Below are positions 1 through 59,049 of a stretch of DNA of 64,000 nucleotides, piece after piece. Position 1 is the first letter of the stretch, and each line of letters begins with the position of its first letter. The notes beneath the pieces were generated by a model, which was not told where the DNA came from, did not search any database, and saw only the letters and a program-made list of their open reading frames with translations. Source of the stretch: Lytechinus pictus. Taxonomy: Eukaryota. The position numbers and the translations under genes are program-made. The stretch covers positions 2,170,001 to 2,234,000 of the forward strand of contig NC_087255.1 in the NCBI RefSeq assembly GCF_037042905.1, read 5' to 3'.

Positions 1-2569
1 GTTTTAAAGAGCGGCAGCTTCTCACAATCCTTAGAGGGGGATGGATGGGGGGAAAGGCGGCTTGGAGGGAGGCGGAAAGGGGCTGCATAGGGAAAGCAAT
101 CCGTGGAGTTCAGAAGGTATCTTAAGACAGGGGGCAACCGGCCCGCGAGCTACCCGATCGCGTTTCATTACCTCTCCAATCATAGTATATCATACCCAGA
201 GAACCGGTGAAAATGAAGCAAGGAATTGAGGTGGAAGAAAGGCCCACAATCCGCCCCCATCGATGGTACTGTAAGCGCGTTCTGAATGTCATTTTTCAGG
301 AACAAAAGACCCGCACCGTTTTTAAAAACCTCTTCCAGTGCGGACACAGAATGGGAGGTAGGATAGTTTTCATTCGCGCTCCTATTCACAAATGTACTTC
401 AAGAAAAGACCTTATTCAAAAAGGGTATCCACCGGAGCGGGGTCTCCCCAACTCACTTGTTTTCCACCTTTCTTTCCTCTCCATCTCTTGCCTTGTTCTC
501 TTATGAACTCGAACTTGGGGAGTGCTATCGTGTAACTCGGTCGGTTTAAGAGAAACTGTTTTGGTTCCTATTTTGTTTTGTTTTCTCAAACTCATTGGTT
601 TCCCCCGCCCCGTCTGTCTAGCGAGGGGTATGTATTTCGTTCCATTCATGCTAGGATTCTGTATCATGTTGGTGATATAGGGGATCACTTTCAGCCATCT
701 CAGTCTACTTCAGACCCGACAGAATTTTGGCAGGAGTTGTCCTCTACACCCAATGTCTACATCTTGACCCTACCTTTACCATGTTTACCCTTATGCTGCC
801 TGCTGCCCTTTTTTAACCCTTTAAAACATACTTTAGTTTTTTTTTCTTATCATGTATATTTCTATATGTGATATTTTCATTTTTCTGCTTTTTAAATGTC
901 TGTAGTCTCAGAGAAGACCAACCACTTTTGCAGGAGAAGACCTAATCTGCCCAAATGTGGAGAATTGAGAAATATAATAAATGAAACAATCTCTTTCTCC
1001 CACCCTCAAAATTGCCGTCGCTCACCATGCTCACTTTATGAATTCATTCATTTAAATAAATATCATGGACAAACGTCAATATCTCGTGTACCTGTATGCA
1101 CATGAAGGTTTTCAACTGCGGTTGGAAAAAAGAAGACATTTTGTAAATTGACAAGTTTACAATTATTAAACAATGACAAAAAGTATACTCAATTAAAAAT
1201 ATTTTGTAACAAAGGAAACGTATCAGAATATGAAATACAAAAAAAATGTTCTTGTCACCTTGATAGAAAAAAGCAAACAGGGGTGAGAAAATAGAGTTCG
1301 ATGGTTTGAATAGACAAAATTATTCTTGCATGATCGCATCTCAATATAATTGTAGCATTGTAATTAGTTTTAGTGATTGTTTTTATTTGTTCGTTGTTAT
1401 GTTGTTTATGAAATCAATGAAACGTTTGATAATATGAAAAAAATGTACAAATAAATGAAAGACATTTTAATCTACAAATGAACGAAAGACATTTTGAAAA
1501 GAAATGAAAAGAAATGTTTCTGGAACATAATTGCCCTCACTATTTACTCTTATTTCTGCACAGCACACTCTTTAATCCCACTCCTAATATTATTGACAGA
1601 AAATAATGTGCCATGAACTTTATAATGTTACGAAGCATCGCTGATGCTATGATTTTGTTAGTTTTTTTTTTACCATGCATATTATTTTTTTTTCGGCTGT
1701 TGTGAGGAAATCATTATGCCCTGGATAAGGGTGAAAAGTTAAGTTGGTTTGACACAAAATTATGAACATTTTGCTGAACCATTTTATGTGTAAAGATTCC
1801 CCCCATCTCTTTTCTAACAACTTAAAAGCATGCAATTCATTTAATCATTGCAACCAGTAGGAGCGAAAGATGTTTGCAACACATGAATTATGGTTATCTC
1901 TATATTATTAATTGAATTATCCTTGTCATAGCTATGATAGCTGGATTGACATTTTGCTTTGTTAATTTTAAAAAAGATCTATTTATATAGACGTAAAACC
2001 TGAAGCTGCAAAATCATTTTTAAATCTTTATAATTAAACTCTTTGAAATCTTTAAAATTTCACTGATATAATTGCTTTACACAATACCATGATCACGATG
2101 ATACGAGTTCTAATGACGTTGTATTTTGTTCCATCTTAAGTCGAACAATCCAAAACTCTTTCCTTCTCACGAAGGTGTATACATGTAGTTTAAAGCATGT
2201 GGGTCTGATAAGCAGGATAAAGTGTATATAAAACATGTAAAAAGTCTCTGGAGAGATTTCTGTGCCAGAAGCGTTTTGTTAGATTGACCCAAATTTCATA
2301 TTTTGTCATTGTTGAAAAAATGCCACCAGTTTTCCTGTTTTCTCTGTTAATGGAACTTTTACTGCTTGTTTTCTATATAAATATAAACTTATATTGCCCT
2401 TAGAAATTCTCTTCATCATTCCTTCCGCTCTTTCATTTTCTGTCCTGTTTACCTAACATTCAATAACATTATTTACTCAACTTCTTTCCTTTTTATCTCC
2501 TATTATTGTCTTCATCATTCTGTCTACCACAATCCCTTCCTTCTCACCCCACCCCCCCCCCATGTACAG

Positions 2570-4990: not shown

Positions 4991-7900
4991 GGAAAAGTCC
5001 AAAAGTCCAATAATAATAATAAAGGAATTTGATAAGTTAACTAATTTTTTGAAAAAAATACGGAGAAATCAGTTTTTGATTCAAATAATACTTTAAAGTC
5101 CTTTCACTAGAAAAGTATGGTTGAACAGAACTAATAAAACGATTAGAACTCCCAAAATCATAGCCCAAACCGTGAATGGTTTCATTCTAAAGTAAGCGGT
5201 TAATGATGAAATCCATCAACCATCTGACAATATTAGACATGACTTGACCTCGAACTAAAAATGGGGTGATTAAAAGAATTGAATCATTTTCACTGAAATC
5301 CCCTTACATGAGCTCCCACACATAATGGTATCCTTATTAGGGAGAGTACTTCTTCAAGGTTTAATAGTCTCGGGAAATAGTTTTTTTTTAATATGGGGTT
5401 TTGCGGCCATGTTGGATTATTTTGACCTGGAGATGATCCTATATTGCAAAATTATTGACAGAAATGGAATCAACGTACCAAATAATTGACGAAAAGAGGG
5501 ATTATTCATGATTTTGGGACAAAAACTTAAGAATTAATAAAAGAAATTCTTACTGAAATCCCTTTACATTAGCTCTTACATGTATAAGCCCCGGAAAGTA
5601 ATTTTTCAAGATGGCGGTTGGCGGCCATCTTGGATTTGATATGAAGATTATTCCTTATGCAAAATTACAGCATTAATTTAATCAACATACCAAATGACTC
5701 ACGAATCGAGTTATTATTCATGATTCTGGGGCAAAGGGTTCAAAAGTTGATATTTCAAGATGGCGTCATATATGGCGGCCATCTTGGATTTGACCTGAAG
5801 ATAACATTACATTGCAAATTAGAAAGCAGAGAGAGATTCTACACCCCCCAAAACCCCTAAACAGAGGTATTACTGGTCATTCTGGGGCAATATGGATCAA
5901 AAGTCAATTTTTCAAGATGGCATCTGGCGGCCATCTTGGATTTGACCTGAAGATGACCTTGTATTGCAAAAATGATAACAGATATCGGTTCTACACACCT
6001 CTAAACCCCTAAAAAGAGTCATTACTCATCATTTTGGGAAAAAGGGTTCGAAAGTTAGGTTTTCAAGATGGCATCTGGCGGCCATTTTGGATTTATGCAA
6101 ATTAGCAAAATTGCCCAAACGGCAACTTTGGGCAACCAAGCTGAATTTGTTCTAGGACCCCATATGAACACGAATCAAGAAAAAAACTTCATCGGAAAGA
6201 ACATTTCTAGGTTCGGAAAATGTCAAATCGACTAAATAGTCATGCTCGGCCATTATGATAGTATTTCCGCCCTCAACGTTAAAGTATAGTCAATGCAATC
6301 GGTATCGCAAGGGTTTTTTTTTCTTCTTTTTCATTTATAATCTCTGGCAAAGACAGTGATGAGTGTTATGTTGATCAGCAGTTCAAGTTTCATTGTTCCA
6401 TAATAAAATTTTGCTGTAGATTCAACACAATGACACAATCGGATGGGAGGGGGCTCTAACGAATGCAAGACAAGTGTCTTGACATAGTTTATAGTTACTA
6501 TACATACTTATTTGTGTTGAGGAAGTTCACAATTAACCTTTGTGCCAAGATATCGTGAACACAACGCTAATACTTCTAAATGATTTGTCGTACAACATTT
6601 TGTTAGAGATAATCAAATAATTGTAGGCTTATGGGTAACTGTGTTTCTTGACTTTTCCCCTATAATTTTGATCGGGGGGGGGGGGGGAGGGGGGTGCCTC
6701 CTTTTGGAACAAACACGATGTGCGTTATGGTATGTGGGGACTCTGTACCAATTTCAGATGGTTACTGATTGTACGTGGAAATTATGAAAACTCATTGTGA
6801 GTTTGTTCTATTATCGTTTATATGACAACTCTGAATTGCTAGAAAAAAATGAATTATTGATCAATGATCAAGTTTAAAGGGTTTGCAGGGTATTTTAAGG
6901 TTATTGTTGTTTCACTGCGATGGAGTGTAAGTAATCTGCTCTTTCTTGCTCCATTCAGAACCAGAAGAAAACGATAGCTCGACATGCTCGAGGTTCTATT
7001 AGAAGTTTTCTCATCATAACTTTTGTAATTGTTGGTATTTTATTTTTTATTTGGATTTTTGTTTTAGTTCTAATTTCATTATCTTCGGAAGATTTGATAC
7101 TGGATGTCATTCATGGTCATAAGATAAGTTGTATAATTGATAAAGATTGACTTTGATTAGCAGTTGATATTTACGTCTAGAGTTATGAGGGACTCGTTAT
7201 TTTGGTGATTGAATCTATTAGTTTTCAGGGCGTATTAATATCGGGGTAAACAGAATGCCTATTGGCACCCTCAAACTTGTTATCAGATAGGGAATGTTTT
7301 TAATTTGAAGGATGTTTGGTTTATGATGTAAGTATATCTAGAACAAACAATTATCTCCTAATTATACCGAGGTAGTTGGCCTAATTCTAAACAGGAAAGA
7401 GTGAAAATGACAACATCCAATGTGATAATATCGTTCATTTTACATCAGACAAAGCCGGCAGACCCATGTTTTCGTTTTCGATCAGATTCTTGTAACTGTT
7501 TTCCGTTGTTTTATCCGAACGGTATCAGCACATAATCCCTTTGGTTGGCCGCCATATCCGTCCATCCATCAGCGGAGAGGGACTTAGCCGATCTGGGACT
7601 CTTTCTTCGCCGTCTCTCTCGGCGTGCAATCGTCCTGACGACCGCCTCCAGTGTAGAGGGCCCGCGTGCAGTCGCTCGAGGTGGGGTTTTACGCAGACTC
7701 ACAAAAAGTGGATGAATAAGAAGACAAGGAGCAAAGCACCCGCTGTGTTTGCCGAGCGGATTAGCGGCCAACCAAAACTTGTTAACGGGGGATCAGCCGG
7801 CTCGGAAGTAGCGCTCGATAGGGTTACTGCCAACAAAGTTTCAGCAGGGGTTCCTACCGATTATCTCGTTATATTCACACCTGCGTGATAAAGGTCTTAG

Positions 7901-10900: not shown

Positions 10901-13900
10901 TCACCACGCCCTAATTCTCTCATTTTCTCCTTATTGCTCGGTATTGTTTTACCTCAATTTCAAATCCTATTTTGTCCAACGCCTGTGGGAGAGAGTTTTC
11001 TTGTCATCTCTTTGTTTTGTTCTAATAACCTTTTCTTGAAAAAGCAGACTGTCTCTAATCTCTCTTGTTTTGCATTCCAAATGGGTCATTGGTACCTGTG
11101 AAGCTAAATTTGAGTTGTTTTTCTTTCCATTTAGGGTCTCATTTTCTCTTTCTTTCTTTTGATACTTTATACCAATGACCATAAGGGTTGAACCAACCCC
11201 TAAGGAACATGAGGGCAGGAGAGTGGGTAAAAAACCCAGAATAATATACACGGTACTGAATCATACAGGAAGTTGTGAGTTGAAAATATCGCTCAGAAAA
11301 TTCTGATTGTAAATCCAAGCTAATTAGTTGTTGATAAAATATATTATTTGCAAATATGTGGTTCATTGCGACGCATCCATATTGTCAATTAAGTAAACAT
11401 ATTATGCTACCTAAAGGCAATTATAACTATGTATAGTAAAAAGGAATTTTAGTAGAGATATTGTAGCATTTATATTTCAGGTAAAATGAATAGCACTTTT
11501 TTGCAAATTTATTTTATTAACAATTAAATCGGCTCGAATTTGATGTATTTATATTTTCAACGATATTTTCCAAATTTTTTAATATAAACTACAGTATGTT
11601 TCTGCAGCAACAACATTGACCTAGCATTTTCCCAAATCACTCCAGCACGTTGCGCAATATTTGCAAAGTTGAAAAATAGAAACACATACAATTCTCTCTG
11701 AAGTTTGATTACTATAAAACCTTTAAGAAAATTGCAATAAAGGTAGGTTTTAAAAAAGGCATTTGAGAAAAAAAGAGTGGGTAGAAAAGAAAGAGCAACT
11801 TATGTTATCGAGAAAGAGAAAGGATTCGAAGAATGGTGAGGAGGGCGGGCGGGCCGGGGGGGGGGGTGAGTGGGTTGTTTCTAAGGTACGATCATAAGCA
11901 AAACATGTCACTGATCCACCCACAATCCGCAATAAAAGGGTATCAATTCCCCCACAACAGCCCGTGTGGAAGAAAACCTCATCTGCAATCGGGAGTGTAT
12001 TCCCCCCCTTGTCTTTTATCTTGCCCCGTCCAGTGCTTGTTCAGTCTCAGTTTACGATCAGTTACACCAAGTAAGCGGGACAATGCAACCGCTACATTTT
12101 ATGAAGTGTACTGAAAAACTTTAGCCTCAAGCTGGTGGAGAAACGAAAATGTTAAGAGGCGTTAATTCGAGAACAACCATTCAAACAATAGGCGAGGTAA
12201 CGCTTTTTATGCCAGAGCTATATACCTCCACCCCTCACTATTCCTAACCTTTCTATTACACCAGCGTTTGACGGCTTGGGGTATTATGGGGGGCTCGTGG
12301 TGTTTTTAAGAAAACTGCTTCTTTGCCGTCTTTAAAAAACATTTGTGTAACTGGAGAAATTAAGGCGATTTATTCTAAAGCGTTTGTTATCATTGTTTTA
12401 TACATTATCGCATTATCGAATAGCCATCAGCTATCGGTTGTGTGTAGTCGTTCCGCCTGGCTCTCTTAAGAAAATCAAGTGCAAAATAAAAAGGTGAACT
12501 TTTATCAGACAGACGATTTAGCGTATGGTGATATGTTAAAAATATAAGAAAATTGAAAAGAAAGTGATAAAGAAGAAGAAAGTTTCACAGAAAGTTAAAA
12601 GTTGCGAAAGATTATGCCAAAATTACATGATTTACTTACAGTATACGAAGACAAGAGAAAAGAAAAAAAAGTATGAGGCTAAAACCATTTTATATTCATT
12701 ATAATCATAGAAAAATTCCGAATGTCACATCAAATTATCTTGTCATTCCTGTAAACATTTATAATAAGTTTACTATAAGAAAACAGGTTATTATTATTTT
12801 ATACATAATAGATGATTAGATGTCAAGTATATTTCAACACAGGCTTGCAGTCGTAAAAATTATCATTTATTCGGTCAAAATGATGGACGAAATGACAATT
12901 TAAAAATCAGTAGGCATGCTAGATGCAATTCGTTAGATTAAATATGTAGTAAACAAATGAGCGTGGAATGCTTTTTGAATATGTAAATAAATGGTTTCTA
13001 ATCAGTTGTGCATATAAATTTATAATTACATAATCGCGTTAATTGCTCTATTGGATTCCCTATGATTTACTTCCTGTTGTATGAATTAGTTTCTTTTCAA
13101 TGTTGATCCCTTTTCTTAAGAATGTTTGCAGTTTACTCTTCTCTCGAATTCTTATCAAAATATAAATGTCTGAACATGTGAAAGTCCGAGGTTTTGCGCT
13201 GCCAATAAATTTCAAGCAAGAAATCGTTTTGTCATCTTAAATCTTTTAATTTTATTTTCATTCATCATGTTCATAGTTTACTTTCCTCTTTTTATCTGTG
13301 TTATTCGCGTGCAGTATCGGCAAAAGACATTACAATCTAAAAGCTTGTTCGACGCCCAATTTTGTTACTTATCTTCGTGCCCTGATAGTCTCACATAAAG
13401 GCACGGGTATTATTTTCAGTTGGAGATGTAGTTGATAACTCAGATCCAACCACCTTTCCACTCCCCATCAACCATTGGCCATATGTCACTCTCTACATCT
13501 CCACTATCATTACAAATTTGCATACCTGCAATCCCCAGTTCTTCACGGAAGCATTGAGCAGTTTGAAAGGTCTATTTGTTGATCCGAGACGCTTGCTAGC
13601 GACTTTTATCTGTTTCTTCTACCCTAGACATCAGCCATCAAACGACTGAAGAACGCCCTACCAACATGGTTTCATTGAGAAAGCAAGAGAAATCTGAGCT
13701 GTATCAGTAACAGAGGAGACGATAGACACTTAATTTTTCAATAGCATGCAGCGAAAACTAATATTTTCCTCCCGCGCATATGTCTTGTTTTTTAGGGGGC
13801 GGGTGAAAGGGTGTGACGATTGCCCGCCGTCGTCCTCATAAAAACCGGGAAAGGAAAGAGTGATGTGATTGGGAAGAAAATAGAAGAGATAGCGACTGAG

Positions 13901-14822
13901 TAGGAAGTATGAAAGCATGATTTTGAGGCGAAAATCATTGAAAAGGGTACTCCGTAAATTATTATATTTTGGGTGAAGGTCAGGTTGATTGCGAGGGGAG
14001 GTTTGTAACTGCGAAGCATTAAGCGTGTTAAGGGGTTGTTCGCTTCGACAACCAAGGCTGGCGCGCTTTTTTTTTTGGGGGGGGGGGGGGTGGTGGTAAT
14101 CGTCAGCCTCTATTCCTCATTGTCTGTGGGAAGCTATTTTTCTATTCAATCTTCGTCATACCTTCAGTCAATCAAGGTATACGGTTTCTTTTCTCTTGAT
14201 CAGCCAGTTGAATGAAGTTAGCTGCATTTGTGTGGCAAGATTGAGTTATACAGCTACTCGAAACAAAAATCGTTTTACATCTTTCCACGTCCATCAGGGT
14301 GAGACGAAAAGAGGGATTCGTCACAGCCGAAGACAGCATCAGTCTGTTGTTGGTGTCACTCCATTCTTCCACCACATCCAGTGGAAGTACACATACGTTT
14401 ATTGGTCTGCTGTTATCATAAGTGGGTTTTTTTCATTTTTATGATTTTGTTGTAGATATTTATTTCTTAAATCAACAATGATTACTTCTATCACCCCCAT
14501 ACAGTATTCCCTTGGCATACATGTATATCTGCGTCGCTGTAGATAGTTGTAAAGTATTGTAAAAATATTTACGAGATTGGCTATAAAAAGATGTTCAGCC
14601 TTTCCAAGCAAATTATTACGGTTACAAGAAGGGTTGCTGATGCTGACAAAAATAAATCTTTAAAGTGTTTATTGATATAGAAGTCTGATAGTCATGGTAT
14701 AGTAGAGTAAGGTGTATAGGCACTGGATACGGGTAGAGGCTTATTACTCTGCTTAATTTTTAAGATTGACCTCTCAATATTTGTAAGGTCCAGGTAGTCG
14801 AAAATGGCTTGGGCAAAATTAA

Positions 14823-16143: not shown

Positions 16144-16567
16144 ACCAGCCTTCCTTTAACAGTTCAACCATGGAGCTATGGTTCAACATTTGGAAAGTAA
16201 GAATCTCCTATAGACTGAACTACTTGGGAAGGATGTCTGTAACCTTTAAGCGATATGAACCCTGGTCTCGCCGCCGAAAAGTACGCTCTAAATCCAGAAT
16301 GACATCCACTGTAAACAAATAAATCTAGGGTTTTTCTACAAGTAGGCTGGTAGATGCTGAACTCAAATCGCTTTTGATGTATCACTCCCCACATCCAGTT
16401 CAGACGGCATAATATGAAAAGGAAATCTTTGAAATATAACGTCCATTAAAGGCCTACCTTTCCTGTTTTTCTTCTGACTGCGGAGATTGTTTCAGAAGGG
16501 GGAGGTGTCTTCTGGAACGTCTTCAAATATTCATTAGCTATTTGAATTTCAAACAACGGGCGATCTG

Positions 16568-19500: not shown

Positions 19501-22500
19501 TTCTTTCCCTGTATACTTCTATCATTATCGCTGCGTCTACGATGCCACCACTATACGACCACTACTTCTACATCTACTACTGATAATGATTGTAGTATTA
19601 GTGATATTCTAGGAATTTAGTACTGGAAAGTTATGATGATGATAATAATAATAATAGGTATTTATATAGCGCCATCTATATAGAAAAATAATCTATTCCG
19701 AGGCGCATTGTTATTTTTACCCCGATTAGGGTACTTCGATCCTAAAAGCGTCCGATGTTTGCATACCTCCCATGGGGGGGGGGAGGGGGGGGGGGGCAGA
19801 ATAGTCAACGAACATTTCAAACACCTGTTTGAACTGTGAACAACTGCATTATTCATACCGTAAAAGGCGTAAACAGCCCCGTGTAAAACTTTTAAACAGC
19901 ATACTGCGCAGAAAACAAGCGAGTGTATACACTTTGTACCAAAAATTATTTTAAATGGTTAGGATAAATGACAAAATAAAATAAAGAAAAATCCTCTGTA
20001 CATGTTTGTTTATGGATAGTAAGGAATAATGCAATTAATATTATTCAGAGTGTGGCTAGTTCAAGAGTAACTGTTAGGGAGTAACTATTGGCTGTAGATG
20101 CACGTCCGGTTTAGGATTAGAAACTTTCTACTTGAAATGAGAATCGATTTATTAGATTTAGAATAAAATGAAGTCGTGTAACGGGGATAGAGTTTCATTT
20201 GTCTTTGGAAACAGGTAGATTGATTAGAAGACCACCGCATTGCCGTTCCTCTCCTATCATACTCAGTTTGACAATAGACGAGCAGACCTGTGCCCACAAA
20301 TTGCAAGCTGTCTAATAGATTGATACAAGATATTCCCCTTTTTAACCCGAGCGAAAAATGAATGACTTCTGTTTGATGAAATGACCATGAGTTGTCTAAA
20401 GTCTTTAACTCTATTTTTTCAAAAAAAAAAGAAACATCCACTGCTCTCCTTTCTCTCTGTCTCTCTGTATCTATCTTTCTCTTTCTCCGTGTATCACTTT
20501 GTCTCTCTTTGTCCTAGTTTCTCCCATTCTCTGTGGACGTCTCCCTACCCTCTCTCTCCCACTTCTCTACCCCGGACTCTCCTCTATATCTCGTGTGTAT
20601 AGTGATTGGTAATGCGATACAGCAAACGTATGAGCCTCCAGAGATGGATTGCCCCCATTTCTGAAAATTACAAATCACAACATTATTGCGTCTGGCCTGG
20701 GGAGGGAGAGGGGATGGCACAAAGTGGGACAAATCACGTGGGTGGACAGACCTTACCTTTAAAGAGAGAATCTCCATCATCTATTTCAAAAGAATCTACA
20801 ATAAAAGAATGCTCCGAGCGAGAGGAACACGCCGGTTCAGGATATCATTCGAATCGGCAGAATCATTTAAATAGATCGTCTTTACTTTGGTATACATGAA
20901 ATTTATGAAAGATTTTAATCTTTCCAACCCTAGATACATGTAGCTGTGTTCGAAATGACCACTCATTCCATTTTACATTTCAAGTGGGAGTGAACAAGAG
21001 GAGGTAAATTGAATGAATATATTCATCGAATGTCTTATTTGCATTATACTGTGAAATGTTCTGAACTGTAGATTCATCTTCGTTTGGTGAATTTTGAACA
21101 ATCTCTTGCAAGTTGATTCTTTGATCAGCTTGATTGAAGATTTGTCTGCAGGTCTATATTAGATGAGCTTTGAGTTGCAATAGACCAGTAATGCCCCCAT
21201 TATACGCAATTTGCTTCTGTCTCCATTTTCCCTATTCTTTGAAAAATTATAAATTGAGTGTAAACGATTTTTTTTTACATTTTCATTCCTTTTCCTCACC
21301 ACAATTTATGTACATCTTAAAAAATACCCCTCTAAAATTATTTCCCCCCTTTTTGACGGGGATGGAATTATTATCCTCGATGTAATTGAAAGGTGTTCTA
21401 TTGTCGTGATTGTGTTTGTGTATATATGACACATCTTAGCCATTGAAGGTCAACTTTCTGAATTTGTCCATACTGAAATATTAATAAATTATGAATGAAT
21501 GAAATGATAAACGAATTAGTCAATAAATTGATACATGAATAAATTGAATAAATAGATAAGCACTTAAATAGATGAATAGATAATTTAATGAATATCTCGA
21601 TAATAGAGCTTTGAAGAAAAATATTCTAGTGTATCTTTAAGGTCTTACAGGGGGTGTATATTATCGCAAATCTGACGTATCTAGAGCGCGCAGTATACCG
21701 TACGGCATAGAAACATGTTTTGCCTATTTGAATCCAATAAATCAGACATAACTTTGAACTTCTGCGGGATGCGATCTCTTTTCTTTCAATCTATTATTAT
21801 AGCCATGCACTTTTCCGTGGGGCAGTCAGTCCACATTTCCTCTCGGCTACTAATTCATTCCAATTAATCACTGCAATCCAACGGCCGTATTTGATAGATC
21901 TTGGGCCTTGTTTCAATTCAGGTCTCATAATTCTAAGATTAGGGGCTTCGAAGAAAGTTAACACTTGCTTTCGTTTGCTTCTGTCCTCAGCTGGGATTCG
22001 AGAATTTAGGTTAGGGCTTATTTTTTATCCAGTCGCAATCTCAGAAGTCCAGTTTTTAAAAAGGTTCACGGGGGACTTGACTTGTTAAGCATTTAACATT
22101 CTTAATATAAATCAACTAATAAATTTGCTTGGGGTGATACCTATCCTGTGGGGTTATAGGATTCATTTTGTTAAGCTTTGAGTATTCGTAAATCCAGTAA
22201 TAAATTGCCGTTTTCTTTAATTTGATTGTTTTATTTTGACAAAAAGTAACACTGTAAATGAAGACTGTCTAGACTCGACATGCTCGATGCTATATTTGAA
22301 AGGGAACGATACATTCGAAGATTATACATACTTTTTCATGATCAAGTAAGTGAGTTGAGTAGGATTAAAGGATTAGTCTCTCACGTCTCGTTTGTAATCA
22401 ATCCATCAATTAATCGTGAAAGTTCGATTACAAAGTCGGTCAAATCTGCAGTTCATGTCTCATTTATAAGTAGGTCACGTTGAAATCGTCGTAAGGTTAT

Positions 22501-24218: not shown

Positions 24219-26435
24219 TGCTACAAAGAGTATAGCAATTTAATATTGTTCTCACGAATACGATACTGACGAAAGTCACTGACGACAAATTAATAGCCGC
24301 ATATCTGTGTGGCAGCGGTGGGCTATTTCATAAGGCTGTTCGTAAAGCTACAGGTCACTTTAGGACGAGATTCTGAACTACCTAATTGTGAACCTACATT
24401 TGTTTTCCTTCAGCTTTAAAGTGTGAATATTTTTCAAATAATCTCGTCTGAAATGTGGCAAACGATTGATTCGCATTAAGAAATTTATGTTAATAGTGTT
24501 ATCATATTCCAACTCTTGCTTTTGCGATTTAATATAAATAAAGGCCTGCGTGGCCTGCCATAATCCAGTCTTTCTCAAAGTTATGTGTAAATTTACAAAC
24601 GATGCCCCGAATCCTTGTTATGGGAACTATATCTCGGTTATTTCAAATTATCAACCATGTTTGAATAACTGTCGCCCCAGATAATGTCGTTGCATAACTT
24701 GTGAAGGAGGTATGGATTCATGTAACTATCGTCAGGAATTAAAGAAGGAACATTGTCCTCAGAGTTTACGTGGATCGTAGCAATGGTTGGAGATGCAGGA
24801 TTAGAAGTTTTAATAAGTCCCTTCATTCAAAAGTCAACAAAGTGTGCGCGATTCGCCTTCTATTTATTTTATGCCCTTCGTTCGCACGACAAACGTGACT
24901 CTCTTTGGCCATTACCCCCGTTTCACAAAACTTATCAGTACGTTTATATTTTCCTCATACATAACAGCAGTTGTTCATGGTCAATCAAATTTTGGTGAAT
25001 TATAACAATTTCTTGTAATTTTTCATTGCATCATGTTTTGTGAAGCAGGGTCCATGATGCAGTATAGACCAAGTGTAACCAGGGAAGTCCCATTTCCCTG
25101 GTATATAACCTACTTCAACATGCATTTGCATACCTAATACTATGAATTTCACAATCGATAATCTCCCATCATCTGATCATGTTCAAATAACAAGTAATAT
25201 GCAATGAAATTAGGGGTAGGAAAAGATAGTGTTAATCAAGATACGACAAGAAAAACATGTATTTATTTCTTAATTATGTTCTAAAATTCCCCTTTTTTTT
25301 TCATTTTCTTTGACAATGTTTTGGGAACTGCGCTTACACAAGGCCACTTGGCTTTATTTATGCAGTTCCCCATTTCATTTTTACTCTTGCTTGTAAATAT
25401 ATTGTTTATCATACCTTGCTTTATAATTGTTTTTATCGAGAATGAAATAAATGCAAATTGAATTGAATTGAAAAAAAAACACAATGAAGGTTATACATGC
25501 TATACAAGAAAGATGAAACCTTGCCGCATTCCACAGAAATGTAGACTAAATTCGTATCAAGTCTATACTTAAATCTGTTATTGCTTTCAAAGAAAAATAC
25601 ACAAGAGGTTTTGATTTGCAGCAGCATGATCAAGTATCCCATGGAAAATGATATTTTTCCATCATCTGCCGGGTGTACTTTGAACGCTTCGACTTATTTT
25701 CAGGACTAAATACCATAAATAAATATTTATTCATGTCAATTCAGCACAATCTTCTCCATCATTGTATCTTATGAAACAAACCATTTTGATAAAATAACAA
25801 TTACTCAATGGTTTGAGCTATGGACCATTAGAAGGGCAATGACCCGATAGGTCGCACACCGAAGCTCTAATAGCCCCATGGGAATATTCGTTTAGTATTA
25901 ACTCAAATGTATACGTTCATTAAGTCAAATTACTGAAGGTAAGCGAAGGAGGGTGATTAAATCATTGATGTCTAACGTTATTTGGATATTTTCTCACTTG
26001 TGTTCATCGATAGGAACCCCTGATTACTTCAATATTTTATTCTGCAGCATTGTATAAGCACAGTGAGACAGATTCAGTCATTATTGTACCCCATTCATGG
26101 CCTTCCCTCAAAGACCAGACTGACCAAGCGAACCCTAGCCATGATCTGTAATAGCTCCATGCTTTATACCCTATCCATAAATATTGGGAATAGTGCGTCC
26201 ATTCTATTTGTCATGAATGTAATATATACAAATGTGTTACATATGCGTGATTATTTCTGATGAATAAAGACTTTTATAGAAAATAAACATATTTATCTTG
26301 TAAATAGTATGTGGGTCGTCAATTATTTTGTGTTTCTTGGCATCTTTCTCTTCCATTTGTGACAAATATATCGATCCTGCGCATTGTAGTTCAATTCCCG
26401 ACACATCGAAGTCAATATTTGGCACCATAGTGTTA

Positions 26436-26620
26436 TATGATGATGATGATGATCAGGATGGTGGTTATGATAATGATCAGGATGATGATAATGTTGATGA
26501 TGATTGTCATGATTGTGATGATGATGATGATGATGATGGAGGTGGTGGTGATGTTGATATTGGTGGTGTTGATGACGGTGATGGTGAAGATGATATAATG
26601 GAGTACGATGGTGAACAATA
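26436..26620. repeat. (GAT/GGT)n microsatellite
   Basis: Degenerate GAT triplet run producing the poly-Asp pseudo-ORF. Confidence 0.85.
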
Positions 26621-39026: not shown

Positions 39027-39170
39027 CTGTTTACACGTAGTAAAAAAGCCGATTCTGCATCGGCTCGCGGTTCAGAACCTACTACTTTGGTGGTGCAAAT
39101 TGCCGGTTCTGAACCGCGAGCCGATTCAAGTTGCTCGCGTTTACACGCTATGAAAAAGCCGATGCTGAAT

Positions 39171-39487: not shown

Positions 39488-39518
<31 letters not shown>

Positions 39519-40096: not shown

Positions 40097-41166
40097 ATGC
40101 TGAATCGGCTCGCGGTTCAGAACCGCGAGCCGATTCAAGTGTAAACACGGTAAAAGTGACATGAAATATATTGCTTAATCATTTTCCAAGTCTTCCCGTG
40201 ACCTTATTTTATTCACTCGTCTCCCTCCTCTTATTTTTCCTCTTCCCTTTTCCTACTTTCTTTCCCCTTCTTTTTCTTTTTTTCTTTCTTTCCCCCTTTT
40301 TTTCATTTTTTTTGCTCCGCCAATAGGGGGGGGGGGGCGGGACCCCTCGGGCCCCCTGGATCCGCCTATGCTGCCCATCGTCTGTCCTAGTATTCGTAAT
40401 ATCATGACCCTATTCTAACATACATCCACACCAAGCATTTAAAATCAACACTGCTCATGGCGTTCAAGGAATAGTAGTTTAAAAAGCACAATCATTTTGA
40501 GGTGATTGTTTCGTTTACCTGGAGGCGGCATACCATCTCATTGGCCCAGATCTCATTTACTTGGGATTTGTTGAAGTGTCTTTTGATAGTCAACTATACA
40601 AACATGAGGATTTAGAAGAACTCAGATGATGAGCCCTCTCCAACCTCATCGTATTCATCGTCATCATCGTGGGATTGGAAGCCGGTTTGGTTTACTCGTG
40701 TTTAATCATCATCATACAGGTCTTAAAGAGAAGATTGACCTCTGGGATATACGACATCCAATACGGATAACAGAGCTTCTAATATTGGGTTCGGAAAGCA
40801 TCATATACCCTACACAGATGCCCCTCACCCTCCCTCCAAGACCCCTATACCGAAAAGAAACAAATATCTCCTTTCACACAAATGTGATGATAAACACTTG
40901 ATTTGAGTCAAGTAACAACCCTAATTGGTCAAAGAACAAATGCAGATTTTGCTATCGATGAAAGTTTCAACCGTTTCATTGATTATTTCAATTCCATTCA
41001 AAGAAAATGTCATCACAACATGGCATGTATGGGTTGACTTCGTGCCAAATTTGAGAATGTCTATGAATAAAAAGAACATGGCGAGAAAGCACAAATCTTG
41101 ATCTGATTAATGATGAACAGATCAGGGAAGGTAAAGATGCTAAAATGTCAGAATACGATCTCGTCT

Positions 41167-41491
41167 TTAAGGGGAAGATATCCACCGTCTCCGCCCAGTC
41201 ATCTCGTCCCCTGGTGCCCTAGACCCTGGGGGTGATGTCCAAAGTAGTATAGCTCCATGGTAGTATCATGATCCCACTCCCCGTCACTGTCCCGTGGGGT
41301 CGATCCTTAAAGTGATGTCTTCTAGGGATTCCTCAAGGGAGATCAACCTGTATGCATATGAGATGTGTACCGTATTTGACGACTTTGGAATGAGAAAATG
41401 TCACCCATCATGATTATAAAGTTGCAAATGAGTAAGGGGAAAGGTTACTAAGATAAAAGATGAACCTTGACCATGTTGACGTTGTTTTTAA
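41167..41491 (+). repeat. Direct duplication, copy 1 (TTAA to TTAA)
   Basis: Aligns with 42096-42384 apart from a few substitutions and four short multi-base indels. Confidence 0.92.
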
Positions 41492-42095
41492 AGGTCAAGT
41501 CCACCCCAGTAAAGCGTAGATCTGAATGAATAGAGAAAAAAAAAAAACTAGCATAACACTGAAAATTTCATCAAAATCGGATGTAAAATAGGAAAATTAT
41601 GGCATTTTAAAGTTTCGCTTATATTTCACAAAACAGTAATATGCACAACTCAGGGACATGCAAATGAGTCAGTCGATGATGTCCATCACTCACTATTTCT
41701 TTTGTTTTTTATTGTTTGAATTATACAATATTTAATTTTTTATAGATTTGACAATAAGGACCAACTTGACTGAACCATATAGTATTAAACAATGCTAATT
41801 CCACATGTTCAGGGCGGAATTAATTGTTGTATCACTTACCAATGAGGAGAAAATTAGAATATTTAATATTTCTCATAATAAAATACAAAAGAAATAGTGA
41901 GTGGATGACGTCATAGTCTCCTCATTTGCATACCAGCCAGTATGTGCATATAACTGTTTTGTGAAATTAAGCGAAACTTTAAAATGTCATAACTTTCTTC
42001 TTTTACATCCGATTTTGATGAAATTTTAAGTGTTATGCTTGTTGGATTTTTGGCTTTTTATTCAAATCAACTTTTTGTTGGGATGGACTTGTCCT
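41492..42095. mobile_element. Kolobok-like MITE (TTAA target), inverted relative to 14823-15425
   Basis: TTAA at 41488-41491 and 42096-42099. TIR AGGTCAAGTCCACCCCA / TGGGATGGACTTGTCCT. Confidence 0.85.
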
Positions 42096-42384
42096 TTAAG
42101 GGAAGATATCCACCGTCTCCGCCCAGTCATCTCATCCCCTGGTGCCCTAGACCCTGGGGGTGATGTCCAAAGTAGTATCATGATCCGTGGGGTCGATCCT
42201 TAAAGTGATGTCTTCTAGGGATTCCTCAAGGAAGATCAACCTGTATGCATATGAAATGTGTACCGTATTCATGGTATTTGACGACTTTGGAATGAGAAAA
42301 TGTCACCCATCATGATTATAAAGTTGCAAATGAGTAAGGGGAAATGTTACTAAGATAAGAGATGAACCTTGACGTTGTTTTTAA
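42096..42384 (+). repeat. Direct duplication, copy 2 (TTAA to TTAA)
   Basis: Aligns with 41167-41491. Confidence 0.92.
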
Positions 42385-44750: not shown

Positions 44751-47700
44751 AACTTGACTATTTACCAGGGGCAAATGACATAGGTTTATTCTTCAATCAA
44801 ATCAATCAAATCAAATCAATCAATCAATCAATCTTCAACAAATATTAAATGATTTAGGATAACTTTTAGAATATCGCTAGGGAAATTTATACGAGTCTTG
44901 TTTATATGAAATCAAAATAAATTATTGGCGATGTTCAAATGACGCGGGAAAACATTCGAATTTATCATGGATAAGACCTCTCGATATAAAATATAAAAAT
45001 AGGAATTATTTCGGTCCTTTGAAGCTAATTATGATATTAAAGTCTGATACCCTAACACGACTACTACTTCCGAATTTTACGATTAACATGCATTTTGCTG
45101 TATTCATTTCTCAGTGCGTATGACGTAACATTTTTTGTCGACATTTTTGTTTTATCGTTTTAACCGCATTTATTGAAAATCCGTCATTTGTTAATGCCAA
45201 CAACGTTTGATTTGTCGACTATTAATGTAATTCTTGTTGATTTTCTTTCAAATGTATTTTTGACATCCGTCGGACCATTTTTTTCAGCCGCACTTTTCAA
45301 CTTGAGTTTGCCTTTACCCCCTAGCCTCTTCAATAACTAACAGAACACCATTCTTTCTTTGCAGCAAGCAGTGCGGAAATATGCCAATAAAAGAAACAGA
45401 GAGAAGTAGAGGTGCGGATTTTAAGCGAACAAAAGGCTTGTATAAACGCGCCTGACACATAAAATATATCGAGTATTGTTATGGGTATGTTTAATACTCA
45501 TAAAGCAATGGCTTTGGGTTGTCTGGCCTATTGTCGCTGACCTGATTCCAGAGGGCACACTAGCGAGAGATGAAAAAATGAAAGAGATGTGGACCAGTTG
45601 AGCTTTACAGGTGCTTGTCAATTTTTTGTTTTGTCGTGGCGTGTTTATCTAAAATGATCCCACCATTTAGAAACTTCTAAAGGGGCACCGCAAAAGGTAA
45701 AGGAAATGTGGTAGCGTACTGAATGGGCTTGAGCAGCACTGTTTCGGTTGACAATTAATGTATGGTGAAGGTCATGAGGGAATTAAAAACGCCATTTTTC
45801 TTGTCTGCTTTAGATTTATATAGTGCGTGAAGAGGTGACAATCAAAAGGCAGACGATATGGTATTGAAATCGTTTTCCTCAATCGATCATCCCTATCGGT
45901 TTATGTCCCAGATCGTCTGACGTGAAAAATGGTGAAAGGGTGGTGGAAAGAAATGAGGTATTACGATGTGAAAGTTAATAAAGGAATAAGAAGGAAGGTT
46001 GGTGAGATAGAGGGAAAGGGGAGGTAACATGCAGGTCCAAATATTGACTCTGGGCTTAAAGTCAATATAAGCATGATAATGATCATGATGATTGTGTCGA
46101 AATGAGGGCATGATCAATTCAAATTGGAACGAATAATTGATTGCAAGAATATGAAAGAAAAACATAGAAATGAAGTCATTCAAAGATCATCTCATAGGGA
46201 GCGGTACAAATGGTTTTTGGTTAGAATGTAAGGATTGAGCCCCGAGGAAACGGGTTCTAATATGGGTCGGGAAGAATGAACGCGACAAAGAATCAATCAC
46301 GCTTTAAAAAAACAAGCCAAGATAAATTTCTAACACGTTGGAATAACATTATTGTTTGCTGGAGGGCGGGGGGTGGGAAGGAAAATTAGGTTTACAGATA
46401 CCGCACCATAAAGTTAGCCCCCTGATTCATCGAACATTGGAAAAAAAATTCTTGATTGGATCGAGACGAAGGCTGGAGGAAAGGCAGATGTGTCGACAAC
46501 AAGAATAGCCATGATAGCCGACAATATTTCAAGATAACCGTGTCAGGGGTGGGGGAGCATTGTTGAGACGGAAATAGGAAAAAAAATAATGATCTCAAAG
46601 TTTAGGTGTCAATCTGAAAGACCCAGGTCATGATAACGATTAATCCATGTTTACAAAAGAATAACACAAAAGCCGTCTGACCTATATTTTCACAATGGTG
46701 CTGACAAACACAAATTTACAAGGGTTTACGGGCTCAATCTCACGCTCAGACTTGTCACATATTAATGTTAATAATGTTGTTTCTCTTGCTGATCATAAGT
46801 ATTGACATAATTTATTCATTATCTATACAAACTCGTGATATTCTTCGCATTCTTTATTTATGAACAAATACCGGCACACTATGTTGTTGTTGTAAGATGC
46901 AAAGCAAAGATAATCATGGAACATAGTGATGGCATGTTCAATTGGTAGTTTTCTTTAAAGGGTCTACGGATTTTAGGTAAGATACATTACTGAAAATATT
47001 GAAATTCAATTTCTTAATATACATCGATATGTTGTTTTCCATTTCCGAATTCAGGTGAAAATAAAAACTGGTGTGATTAATTTCCAACCGCATAACCCAC
47101 TCTATCTCTACTTTCGTATGACTTTATTTGTAGACCCGTTGCCCTTTGCTAATTAAAGTTTCGTCTATTTTGCTGCTGCCCCGTTTTAAAGAGTTTGCGT
47201 TATTTCGATCAATATTGTTTAACACATGTAGACATATACATGCCATAGTCGTATCAGCGAAACCGATCAAAGACCGAACAAATGAAATACGTTATTTCCA
47301 ATGAGTCGGTTACTACTAAAACATGTTGAAAACAATTTTATAATGACGCACGTGAATCTACATTTTGCCTTAGAAGTAGAAGAAACACCAACACTTATCG
47401 TGCTTATTATATCCGTAGGAGAAACGTTTAGAGAAACAATCGTGTTTGACAAGTACCTTATCCAACATCTTGCCTCTGTAACGCACTATGCGCATTTTCG
47501 CCCTTACCCCGTTGCCTAAATACCCGTAAGCGTTTGCAATCCGCGGCGCACACATCGAGTGCTTTTGCTGCGCGCATCTTCGCTTATGCCTTCGAGATGT
47601 GAGAATACAAACGAGTTTGTAAAGTGAGGCGTTGAGAAGGCTTATGTTTGGATGAAGTTATTGAACATTGCTCTTATATTTCCTTCAATTTTCCCCACTC

Positions 47701-49238: not shown

Positions 49239-50099
49239 AAACAAGTGGAACGCCTCTGGCATGCAGTCTCGCCTGCATTACGCGATTTGATATACATGAT
49301 ATAGCAGCAGTACTGACTTCGTAAACAGCTATTGAATAATTATTCACAAAAGAAAACACTCGTATGATAATGAAATACTGTGTCCATTGACCCAACATGA
49401 CCTTTGACCATGATCATGTGACCTAAGACGTGTGCAAAACGACCATTCATACTTAATTATATCTATGTTTCATGAACTACATGTGTGAATCCATACATTT
49501 TCTAAGTTATGATGCCAATTTAACAAATACCCCCAACATGGCCAATGTTCACTGACCTTAAATGACCTTTGATCTTGCTCATGTAACCTGAAACACGCAC
49601 AGGATATTCCGGGATGGCTACTCTTATGTCCAAGTTTCATGAACGAGATCTATAAACTTTTTAAAGTAATAATGACAATTCCACAAACACCCACAACATT
49701 ATCAAAGTTTGTTGACCCTAAATGACCATTGACCTCGGACATGTGACCTGAAACTCGCACAGGATGTTCAGGGATACTTATGTCCATGTTTCATGAACTA
49801 GATCTATAAACTCTTAAAGTAATGACGACAATTCCACAAATACCACAACATGGTCAAAGTTCGTTTACCCTAAGTGACTTTTGAACTTGGTCATGTGACC
49901 TGAAACTCGGGCAGGATCTTCGGTAATACACTATCACCCTTGCTTATGTCCAAGTTTCGTGAACTAGCTCAATATACTTTCCAAGTTATGATGACATTTC
50001 AAAAACTTAAACTTGGTTAAGATTTCAATGTTGACGACGCCGCCGCCGTCGGAAAAGCGGCGCCTATAGTCTCGCTCTGCTATGCAGGCGAGACAAAAA
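49239..50099 (-). mobile_element. Non-autonomous Helentron (HINE / DINE-1-like) with internal ~140-bp tandem repeats
   Basis: Sub-terminal inverted repeats GTCTCGCCTGCA (~49266) / TGCAGGCGAGAC (~50083), adjacent short inverted repeat GTCTCGCT, A/T-run ends without TSD. About four copies of TGACCTTTGACC..CATGTGACCTGAAAC..ATGTCCAAGTTTCATGAACTAG. Confidence 0.72.
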
Positions 50100-54788: not shown

Positions 54789-57700
54789 ATACGTAATGCA
54801 ACCAATGTCAAGCATTTACAATGATGATATTTACTTGAATTAATGCATATGAACGGAACAGAGTATATTAATGGAATATCAGTAACCTCTCTTCTTCGTC
54901 ATTCGTCCAGTCAAGCTCCCCTTCTCTGTCCACACACACGCCCCCAAAAAACTCTTAATTATCACATAATGAGAGCAAGGAAGGAGGATAATAAGATGGG
55001 CTAAAAACGTATCCGTCCTGTGGCTGCTTGTATCAACAAAACTTCAGACAAAATCGGAGCCAATTCATGATTGTCTCACTCAATAGAGGAGCGCTCCGCA
55101 CTCTGCGGTTCGAACGCGCGCGCCCAAAAAATCAGAGCAAGATAAAAGAAAATCATTTTGGATGATTCAGCCCGATAAGCCGGCTTTTGTTTTAAATGGA
55201 ACTGTGAAAACATAACCGATGAAGAAACTTGTCAACGGCCGGGATTAAGTTCCCAGACCTTCAAGTTTTAGTTTGGAGGACTTGACCCAGTTTCTAACCT
55301 CGTGGCCTATTTTTGGAAGGGCAACCTATCTAAGCAGACGATGTCCCTTTTCCCCTCTTTTTGCTCTATCTCATATTGTATGATATTATAGTGAGTTACT
55401 GTAGTAGCCATCATATTTTGCATGATAACATGAGGCTAAATCGAATTAGGAACAAGCTTATTATTGACCTTTCCACGAATTCATTATTTAAGACGTAATT
55501 TCTGAACTGAATTGAAGACATCAGCGTCGTCCTCATGCATAATTGTAACAATCAGATACTCGCCTCTGTATTTTTCTCAATCCAACCATTATTTAATCAG
55601 TCTGGTCTAATAGAAAGAAGATTTATATATGTGTATTTTCTGACTCTGATAATTTGATATTAAACTATGCAATAATATTATACTTTGTCAACTTTATCAT
55701 TCATATTTCAATGTGGAGTTATGTACCACTATTTTGTTCTTAATGCGTGTTTAGTTTTGTAATTGCATTGAACGAATTGGGTGACAGCAATAAATGTAAA
55801 ATTAGAAAACAATAAGAGGAAAAACATGAAAGATGACCGGTAAGCCTCTTGAAAACATCTTGCAAAGTTGACAAAAAGTATTACTAAAAAGATTATCATA
55901 ACATCAGCGATAAACATATGTCATACGTGATATGACGATGTCCTACATTATTTTGTCATTTTATTTGTTTTGTTTTCTTGTTATAATCATATTAACCCGC
56001 GTTTGGCATGTTGGTAGGGGGTGAGGGTAGTGTGTTCTGTGTTGACCTTTTGGTGTAGGTGCTCAGTCGGGCCGATATTCACGCTAGCACAACACCTAAT
56101 CTGAAGAGAAGTTGGTCCTGGCCAGTGTAAATATCAACGGTGCTGATCTGTACAATAATGTGATTTTGACAATTTTTGTAAACTCATATTAGATGCTAAG
56201 AAGCGCAAATGCAACAATGCTTCCTGAATTATACACCAACACCGAAGTTGAAATCACCCAGGCTATTTTTTCGGGGGGGGGGGGGGGGCTATTTTAATGC
56301 AAGGTCGTAGACAGGTAGAAGAACTGCAATCATGGCAATGTTGTATTGTTATCATTTGTGATAAGACATCAAATCACTCACGACAGCGGTCTCCTATATT
56401 TAGGTTCATTAATCTAAAGAAAGGTATATTACTACTTTTTATCATCGCTGTATATTCTTTATATTTCGACTATTTATTGTTATGAATTTCTTTATTTATA
56501 TTGTTTATGCAAATATATCGTATGCCGGTATTGTACAATAATCATGACAAGGTTAACGCAAAAGTTAAATCAAACAAACAAACAAAGCATTTGTTTTATT
56601 TATTTATTCCTTTGTTTCATTTTTTTACAAAATACGTAGAGAACATCTATAAAGGATTTATGTTCCTTGAAAAATTGATGAACTTTGGATATTAAAACTG
56701 CGTCAGTTTTGAAGCATACCAGTTTCTATTATAAAGAAAAAACTCATAAAGCAGTCTGCATATAATAATAAAGAAAACAAAGAAACATTGTGGCTCATAA
56801 AAAGAGACAAAGCGAAACGGTTTTAGTTATGTTTAACATATGATAACCCATACGAATGAAAAATTGGGGATTTAAACAACCTGTCTTGTTTCCTTTATAA
56901 AAAGCCATTACCACCTCTGGGTTGGGAACACACGCCGAAAATCCCTGCGACGAAATGGGATCCCTATGCATTTTAATACCGGCAGTATTCGGCGGCAACT
57001 CGGCAGCCAAGAATCGGCCAACATGCGGATATTCTTCAAAAACTCCATGAATAATTCAGCCTCATTTATTTTGGTTTGTTTCAGTTTTTCGATAGGAGAC
57101 GGTGGGATTAAGTGCAAATGTTTAATGAATAATTAGCCATGAGACAGATAGTCTTCAAACTAGACCTCAGATGTTGGTTAAGGCGTTGCCGAGACGAGGG
57201 TGACGAAAAAAAGTAATCCGACGCTGCCCGGCATTCGCCTCCCGTATACACTACTTGGTCGCTGTGCCAAGATTACTACGCAAGATAGCAGATCACGATT
57301 TGGTCTGAATTCAAAGGATAGAAATTATTTAATACATTTCCATGCATTAATGAACCCCTTTATTTGTTTCATTATCGAAAGGATATCGGACATAAAGCCT
57401 AATTACTGAAAGGCGGCAGCGGTGCCGAAAACGCATGGTCGCATCGAATCTCGCGCCGAGCATTTAGACCATCACCACAATAGGCGTTGGTGGTAGTCGG
57501 CAGGAGTCATCGTAGACCACGGCTTTGCAACTCTTTTCTCCTTGTATTCAACGTTGACATTTGATGGATGTGAAGCCTAGTTTCGTGGAGATATAGAAGC
57601 AGTGGAAAAAGCGGGGTGAGACGGCGAAATCGTCTCTTCTCTTCCCAGCTCCCCGAACATGCCGAATTTGCAATTAAAATGTAGGAAAGTAAAGTCAGCG

Positions 57701-59049
57701 AACGCTTCGAGAGTCGGCTCTCGAGGCAGCAACAACCAAACCTCCTAATCTCGTGCCAGAGTGATAAAATACCCGGATTTTGCAGCAACGTGATGTGCCT
57801 GGTTTGATAGTAAATCCAGCATTTGTAAAGCTGAAGGGCTTGTCATAAAGTCAAAACTAAATGTTTGATCAAATCCGTAAGTAGACAGCCGCGAATAAAA
57901 ATATTGATGTATTCAAAGACCTGAGCTGTATCTTCAAAGTCAGACTTTCCTCTGATATTTTTCATGCATAGTGATTAAGTCTTATGAAGGCTAATCCTCC
58001 AATAGCTGTTTTTATGATCTTTCATTTCTCACCCCCTTCTCGCACATTACCCATGATCCTCTCTGCGGCTCAGTAAAAGTAGGGTGTATATTTCAGATTT
58101 GGCCTCATTAACATTCAAATTATCCCCTATCGTACATTTATAGAATGCAATTTACTTTTCGACATCACGAAGACTGGTGAAACGGCAGAATGGTTGAGTA
58201 AAATGAAATAGTTGCCATGTATGTTTGTAATATTTCCCCATTTAAATCCATACGATGTAGACTCAATCAATGATTTGTTAAGACCGCTTAGAATTTTCAG
58301 AAAAATAAAATATCGTTTGTTCGTTCGTCACAATGTTCGCATATTCAATAAAGACATCATAGATTTCATGAGCACAGTTCATATTAATTTCCACTAAATG
58401 TAAATGTATATGAAAGGCAGTTATCTCCCACGTGAAACTAAAACATTTAGGATAATAGGGATATTCAAGTGACCTAAAGTGACTACGTTTCCGGGGGGGG
58501 GGGTTAAGGACTATTTCAAAAGTATTACCCCAAATGATCAGTAGTTTCTGCATAAATCACGCCTTTCCACCTGCCAAGGTAAGTTTACAAAGAATGAGGG
58601 ATCACATATCAAGAGTCATGTATATATAGTTATCCTTTTTCACTATTTATTCGATAATATAGGGCTACTGTAACAAGTTGTCACAATCACGACGATTGCA
58701 TGGGCGAAATCTTTCTGCAGTTGAGAGTTCATATCTTCGAGGCTTCCTTCGACGATTCGTTAAAACACTCGTCATGCTCGTTGGCAAAGTTCCTACAATT
58801 TTTCATCAATCAAAAATTCATGACATAAAGGATTCAAATCCAAAACATTAGTCCGTTCCGTAGCCAAACATACAGCAATGGACAACAAAACAGCGAAAAA
58901 CAATAAACAACGGCAGCAACAATAGCAACGTAAACAAAAATGACAATGGAAACACGTACTAATTATATCGAGGATAGCAATTTACAATATACAATGTTAA
59001 TTATCAGAAGCACCTGCCAATCCACTACTTTCTCGAATCCTGAGAGGGC

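Follow-up and report, generated by a model that had tools for sequence, protein, structure and literature searches.

Excision of DNA transposons is known to leave footprints at the donor site. Tc1/Tc3-type ends give rise to TA-CATG-TA and Sleeping Beauty to TA-CAG/CTG-TA, and the 5' strand is cut inside the element, at 2–3 nucleotides (nt) in Tc1/mariner and at 17 nt in the P element. Symmetric target sites are equally familiar, such as nTnnnnAn for hAT, the 5-bp N-Y-S-R-N for phage Mu and the 5-bp GTWAC for HIV-1. Three transposon excision pathways are summarised in PMC5499845. Among eukaryotic cut-and-paste superfamilies, Transib is the one classically defined by a 5-bp target site duplication (TSD), and its ends read CAC...GTG (PMC1131882). 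In the published Transib/RAG chemistry, the DNA is cut at the border of the heptamer, through a nick and a hairpin formed on the flank (PMC4840297; PMC5499845), and the targets are GC-rich (PMC1131882; PMC4840297). A preprint reports that both the length of the TSD and the target preference vary within Transib lineages (bioRxiv 10.64898/2026.08.26.747230). Here, we describe a class of micro-insertions in the sea urchin Lytechinus pictus, found in a stretch of 64,000 nt of contig NC_087255.1 (assembly GCF_037042905.1, positions 2,170,001 to 2,234,000, forward strand; hereafter the window, in which all positions below are counted). Each of them consists of a tetramer, mostly CATG, placed between two exact copies of a 5-bp sequence. 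These N5-C(A/G)(T/C)G-N5 sites are probably the repair scars of a cut-and-paste DNA transposon that was inserted and then excised, and that is known here from its scars alone.

The window consists of AT-rich animal DNA (GC content of 32–41% per 2-kb bin) and includes three runs of N, which were left as they stood. CATG enclosed by an exact 5-bp direct repeat (N5-CATG-N5) occurs 16 times in these 64 kb, each time in a different context, and a self-BLAST indicates that the scar sites are not copies of each other. In 300 dinucleotide-preserving shuffles, the mean number of such sites was 0.36 and the maximum 3. The corresponding Poisson P is ~3e-21 against the shuffle mean and ~1e-9 against a repeat-inflated background of 2.1. 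A proportion of 4.6% of the window's 349 CATG words is flanked in this way, compared to 0.6% for all other 4-mers pooled, a value that is itself inflated by microsatellites. Between 4-bp repeats CATG is found three times, and between 6-, 7-, 8- and 9-bp repeats it does not occur. Similarly, a scan of repeat lengths of 4–6 combined with insert lengths of 1–10, from which period extensions were removed, yielded a single outlier, i.e., CATG as a 4-nt insert between repeats of length 5. The initial annotation, made from the letters of the window alone, had quoted four strings (41467-41480, 42265-42278, 41244-41266 and 49290-49303), had noted that CATG directly before a short duplication in three of four multi-base indels looks non-random and had proposed a comparison with other 4-mers and repeat lengths. 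All four strings are present at these positions, the shuffles bear out the non-randomness, and the comparison, run on the window, ranks CATG first of all 4-mers between 5-bp repeats and confines its enrichment to that repeat length. In the literature, we found nothing on N5-CATG-N5 scars or on a 5-bp scar class; what is already known is excision footprints as a kind, and the 5-bp CATG scars are a class of micro-insertion.

A smaller set of sites carries a variant core. N5-CGTG-N5 was found four times and N5-CACG-N5 twice, all at unique sites (six out of 187 words, with ~0.2 expected). The remaining cores with one mismatch are close to background and score low for the target motif described below. 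The scar core can be written as C-R-Y-G and is represented by 22 scars (Table 1), or 0.35 per kb on a basis of 63.5 kb. Longer CA...TG inserts (5–60 bp) between 5-bp repeats show no excess in the window (37 against 34 expected). CATG between 5-bp flanks that match at four out of five positions was found at 16 sites versus 10.5 expected and, because this excess of ~5 stands beside 16 perfect TSD pairs, few of the scars appear to have decayed. We estimate the mean scar divergence at ~3%, an age that falls within the range of the differences between the window and contigs of other individuals (4–8%). Two other routes to the core were considered and rejected. Decay of CpG in CGCG, CACG or CGTG would yield TGTG and CACA just as often as CATG, and these are at background (CACA and TGTG number one and two) with low motif scores. 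An origin as P-nucleotides upon hairpin opening would call for TSDs that read CAxTG, and there is no enrichment of P-type junctions.

Support for the direction of the change comes from a pair of paralogues, X and X', which are the only two copies of their sequence in the window and flank a fold-back miniature inverted-repeat transposable element (MITE) as a direct repeat of ~300 bp. An automatic count of nine substitutions between them is inflated by a merged 35-column gap. Four multi-base indels separate the two copies: two of 9 bp with the N5-CATG-N5 structure, one of 16 bp in X with a 7-bp duplication, and one of 19 bp. The identical architecture of the two 9-bp indels had been pointed out in the initial annotation, and the alignment confirms that each is private to one copy, the scar at 41467 to X and the scar at 42265 to X'. 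Over a divergence of ~1.8%, the pair has gained three scars and one 19-bp indel, so that scars rival substitutions in number. A further scar (49290), for which no sibling copy is available in the window, could be polarised with other copies of the high-copy repeat in which it lies, present without the insert in sequencing runs of two species. One contig from another species (X16) matches the window through 49294 and then continues with GCAGCAGTGCTAAC, and a second contig (X1) reads AATATAGCAGCAGTGCTG across the site. Both have a single ATATA, directly followed by the sequence that in the window comes after the second ATATA, and CATGATATA is therefore a derived insertion in the window copy. The long form is in this way supported as derived at three of the 22 scars (41467, 42265 and 49290). 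For the scar at 46505, both sides align to a contig from another species (X11) in which the unaligned interval between them is shorter by 10 nt than in the window, which is weakly compatible with an empty site.

The sites that were hit resemble each other outside the insert as well. When the empty sites are rebuilt by deleting the 9-bp insert at each of the 22 scars, their consensus is 5'-AC-N/N-T-N-R-N/N-GT-3' (slashes enclose the duplicated bases), which is two-fold symmetric. On the left flank, A-2 is present in 14 and C-1 in 13 of the 22 sites (P = 3e-5 for the latter); within the TSD, T2 is present in 17 (P = 1e-5; a pyrimidine in 21) and R4 in 19; on the right flank, G+7 is present in 10 and T+8 in 13. 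The other 331 CATG words lack these AC and GT signals, with 28%, 16%, 18% and 34% at the same four flank positions, and generic CATG contexts lean somewhat toward T2 and R4. In 88 other repeats of the form N5-x4-N5, T2 (33%) and R4 (50%) are at background. The GC content of the scar TSDs equals the genome average (34%). A classifier built on the six target positions was applied to all 5-bp repeats with inserts of 0–12 nt, and its high scorers nearly all contain CATG, CGTG or CACG. A high target-motif score was also obtained for ATTAT-CA-ATTAT (44218-44229), which may be a half-scar with one element end retained. As the symmetric motif extends past the duplicated bases, it points to a dimeric transposase or integrase that would choose its target and cut it with a 5-bp stagger. 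The DDE enzymes named above (hAT, phage Mu and HIV-1) likewise place T or Y second and A or R second from the end in the duplicated segment, but differ from the scars in TSD length or in having TG...CA ends. An element of the latter kind, i.e., a long terminal repeat (LTR) or Ginger-type element, was rejected as donor, as only one of 220 TGCA words is arranged as N5-TGCA-N5; Ginger termini read TGTNR (PMC2836005).

Models of deletion, slippage or assembly error leave this symmetric motif unexplained. It is very unlikely that the long forms are ancestral or due to chance and that the short forms arose by 9-bp microhomology deletions: 5-bp direct repeats can mediate deletions and two copies alone, such as X and X', give no formal polarity, but an excess of N5-CATG-N5 that is 40-fold and made up of unique sites could not result from deletions, the other copies of the repeat at 49290 are of the short form, and the AC/GT motif outside the repeat has no role in a deletion. 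An artefact of assembly or sequencing is hardly credible either, since it would not choose a palindromic genomic target, nor would it hit each paralogue once. As a crude negative control, we used 754 kb of unrelated metagenome sequence (120 contigs, retrieved with a 17-mer of the high-copy repeat), and none of these 120 contigs shows similarity to the window. Here, N5 flanks occur at 0.5% of the CATG words, several of which represent one gene seen repeatedly, versus the 4.6% in the window.

Two further scar classes also carry CATG. The 16-bp indel at 41244 had been included in the same pattern by the initial annotation. It belongs instead to a separate, P-like class, given its 7-bp duplication, its insert and a terminus that it has in common with the site at 16162. 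A different integration stagger (7 versus 5 bp) implies a different enzyme. Footprints of the P-element type are similar to the 5-bp scars in that termini start with CATG and both TSD copies are kept, but they have a TSD of 7–8 bp (7 bp here) and retain 9–12 or more nt of the terminus. N7-CATG-N7 and N8-CATG-N8 are both absent from the window (0 each), and the P-type spacing is found at 41244 and 16162 and not in the 5-bp class. A third AGCTCCATG, at 26153-26161, has no clear duplication. The second class consists of TACATGTA words, the Tc1-type TA-CATG-TA, of which there are five (2180, 5577, 14518, 20935 and 27977), fewer than in the 5-bp class. Footprints of Tc1/mariner and the 5-bp scars share two intact target duplications with a few bases between them that may be CA and TG from the element ends, a high degree of stereotypy and an implied 5'-strand cut a few nt inside the element. 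What sets Tc1/mariner apart is its obligatory TA, as opposed to 5 bp of nearly any sequence within AC-N/NTNRN/N-GT.

The occurrence of CATG in all three classes also bears on repair without any transposon. For example, a host nuclease could make breaks with a 5-bp stagger; after fill-in, CATG would come from a biased polymerase or ligation step, or from templating by polymerase theta. The scar is unusually uniform and no donor element is seen in the window, both of which would suit such a repair signature, yet we consider it improbable: templated insertions would be copied from sequence close by and differ from site to site, the only variation in the core is of the C-R-Y-G kind, as would be seen with element termini, and the same CATG forms the core of the TA scars and ends the P-like ones. 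To our knowledge, no end-joining step adds a single constant palindromic tetramer. Sequence-biased end joining had been offered as an alternative in the initial annotation, and we set it aside, as the constant CATG and the symmetric flanking motif indicate specific ends and a site-selecting enzyme. Its other proposal, that an element with a 5-bp TSD and CA...TG ends may have left these footprints, agrees with the data, as only C-R-Y-G cores and 5-bp duplications are enriched, the target is palindromic and the polarised cases are insertions.

A constant tetramer between intact TSDs implies defined DNA ends, i.e., the termini of an inserted element, and excision of such an element can be pictured as follows. 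Judging from the anatomy of the scars, a dimeric transposase would select AC-N/N-T-N-R-N/N-GT and join the element ends to it 5 bp apart, after which gap filling would duplicate the 5 bp. Excision would resemble that of Tc1/mariner and P: the 3' strands would be cut exactly at the ends, leaving the element intact, and the 5' strands would be cut 2–4 nt inside the element, by which the flanks would keep a 3' overhang of CA, CAT or CATG. Since survival of the element needs an exact 3' cut, element bases can remain on a flank only through cuts of the 5' strands within the element. The overhangs would then be filled in, or annealed via the self-complementary AT or CATG, and ligated without nibbling, which would result in TSD-CATG-TSD. 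Three versions of this last step would fit equally well: a CA overhang that is filled in and blunt-joined, a CAT overhang that anneals via AT, or a cohesive CATG that is ligated directly. The CATG core itself is compatible with 2+2, overlapping 3+3 and a 4-nt cohesive end alike, and the near lack of by-products may favour some annealing. The CGTG and CACG scars could derive from donor copies in which one end alone has G rather than A at position 2.

As to the family of the donor, the initial annotation had suggested a Transib/RAG-like element. This would be a sub-case of the excision reading, in which, for instance, the initial nick falls 2 nt within the heptamer and the hairpin tip carries CA, and it is a possible but rather doubtful one. 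The scars share with Transib/RAG-like elements the 5-bp TSD and, in the outer 2 nt, ends compatible with CA(C)...(G)TG, which fit the definition of the superfamily (PMC1131882), and the lability of TSD length and target reported within lineages (bioRxiv 10.64898/2026.08.26.747230) is in its favour. The 5-bp TSD is the part of the suggestion that stands. On the contrary, published targets are GC-rich versus scar TSDs with 34% GC and an nTnRn core, and no Transib copy is present in the window. With the known hairpin cleavage, the flank is free of element bases, whereas the scars have a constant CATG and are AT-neutral. A nick and hairpin on the flank would further predict TSD-dependent P-nucleotides or nibbling, and neither P-nucleotide nor variable junctions characterise the scars. 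Six of the 22 scars have CG at one end, and only the outer 2 nt of each element end survive in a scar. We know of no described flank-hairpin enzyme with its first nick 2 nt inside the element, which would be the sole hairpin route to a CATG scar, and we found no literature on Transib footprints in vivo.

The search for a donor within the window was run in several modes: CA..TG ends with a 5-bp TSD and terminal inverted repeats (TIRs) matching at ≥10/14 positions; any TIR with a TSD of 4–9 bp; heptamer-based CAC..GTG; a gapped alignment of 30-nt ends that included CG ends; and a filter on the target motif. The only candidate, at 48107-52338 (TCCAA, CACTGAAAA), is at chance level (~0.35 expected by our own estimate), has no notable open reading frame (ORF) and is collinear in contigs of other individuals. 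A perfect match at 3593-5774 is merely part of a 290-nt inverted repeat. A MITE at 39170-40098 that seemed to have a 5-bp TSD has in fact one of 9 bp, ATGCTGAAT. The fold-back MITE between X and X' does not qualify as donor type either, having a TTAA target and AGG...CCT ends. No Pfam matches were obtained for the ORFs of the window, and a word search with the ORF spanning the scar at 17785 was also empty.

Several points weigh against the reading as excision scars. The 64-kb window yielded no donor that combines a 5-bp TSD with CA...TG ends, and ~0.35 scars per kb without a nearby donor requires a very high past turnover. Element bases would not be expected at the flanks after Transib hairpin cleavage. 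Furthermore, the cut positions proposed above are drawn from analogy with other transposons.

A number of other features were observed along the way. The inverted repeat around the match at 3593 extends over 3400-5968, with arms at 3476-3765 and 5602-5891 that are 97% complementary, and is built from units in which the palindrome CAAGATGGC..GCCATCTTG is found. At the left end of the CACTGAAAA candidate, 12 nt (48108-48119) are missing in contigs of two other individuals (X1 and X2). The MITE with the 9-bp TSD, which occupies 39161-40107, has the TIR TAGCCTCTTGTCGAGG and an 89-amino-acid ORF without Pfam match; it would fit AcademH-type elements, which have TSDs of 9–10 bp. A satellite-like array at 29000-32400 reaches a self-hit depth of up to 63, and a short array of GGTTCGTTAATCCGAAAACGAAATAA-type units, in tandem and inverted arrangement, follows directly after X' at 42390-42800. 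The high-copy repeat at 49100-49499 has a summed contig depth of 1e4–3e5 in two runs of organism A and is found in runs of two other species too. Most of its copies are without 4 nt at 49259, and tandem units of ~165 bp continue from it to 50000.

Table 1. Scars, variant scars and paralogous copies in the window (strand given as + or, where none applies, as a dot).
Feature	Positions	Strand	Remark
Scar TTTAC-CATG-TTTAC	775..788	.	
Scar CTCAC-CATG-CTCAC	1021..1034	.	
Scar TAAAA-CATG-TAAAA	2229..2242	.	
Scar CTCGA-CATG-CTCGA	6978..6991	.	
Scar TTCAT-CATG-TTCAT	13261..13274	.	
Scar ACCAA-CATG-ACCAA	17785..17798	.	
Scar CTCGA-CATG-CTCGA	22274..22287	.	
Scar ATTGT-CATG-ATTGT	26503..26516	.	Adjoins a GAT microsatellite and is therefore less certain
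Scar TTGAC-CATG-TTGAC	41467..41480	.	In X; single TTGAC in X'
Scar GTATT-CATG-GTATT	42265..42278	.	In X'; single GTATT in X
Scar ATGAT-CATG-ATGAT	46079..46092	.	ATGAT-rich context; 4/5-match CATG site 12 bp upstream (46067)
Scar ATAGC-CATG-ATAGC	46505..46518	.	
Scar ATATA-CATG-ATATA	49290..49303	.	Within a very high-copy repeat; other copies read ATATA, then GCAGCAG (empty)
Scar GCAAT-CATG-GCAAT	56326..56339	.	
Scar CCGAA-CATG-CCGAA	57653..57666	.	
Scar CTCGT-CATG-CTCGT	58768..58781	.	
Variant scar ATGAT-CACG-ATGAT	2089..2102	.	CACG is the reverse complement of CGTG
Variant scar TTAAG-CGTG-TTAAG	14019..14032	.	
Variant scar ATTGT-CGTG-ATTGT	21400..21413	.	
Variant scar GCCTG-CGTG-GCCTG	24544..24557	.	
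Variant scar GTAAA-CACG-GTAAA	40141..40154	.	
Variant scar CTTAT-CGTG-CTTAT	47394..47407	.	
7-bp-TSD scar GTAGTAT-AGCTCCATG-GTAGTAT	41244..41266	.	P-like, terminus CATGGAGCT; absent from X'
Sister 7-bp-TSD scar GTTCAAC-CATGGAGCTATG-GTTCAAC	16162..16187	.	Terminus CATGGAGCT in opposite orientation
Copy X	41167..41495	+	Paralogue exposing the indels
Copy X'	42095..42384	+	~5 true substitutions over ~280 aligned bp versus X, alignment read by eye
Fold-back MITE between X and X'	41496..42094	.	TTAA-bounded

Transposon traffic leaves a fossil record in the form of excision scars, which persist after the elements are gone. On the reading preferred here, an enzyme that integrates with a 5-bp stagger at a defined palindromic target would have been very active recently in this sea urchin, and its chemistry at the donor site would be readable from the scar, with element bases kept as in Tc1 and P, unlike in the published hairpin chemistry of Transib. 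Together, the 5-bp, TA and 7-bp scars would make up a sizeable and predictable share of small insertions, as in the X/X' pair, where they account for three of the four multi-base indels compared to ~5 substitutions. The motif and the scar provide a precise search key for the donor family. It is conceivable, though we think it unlikely, that this donor belongs to a very active cut-and-paste lineage, either a new superfamily with a 5-bp TSD or a Transib/RAG-like one, that integrates at AC-N/NTNRN/N-GT and leaves element bases on the donor flanks, unlike any studied Transib or RAG system, by staggered cleavage inside its ends or by an offset first nick. Should such a lineage exist, a genome with ~0.35 scars per kb would have undergone a few hundred thousand of these events, which would place the process among the chief contributors of small insertions in sea urchins. 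If the donor were Transib/RAG-like, the scar would be informative on the handling of donor flanks by RAG-type enzymes in vivo.

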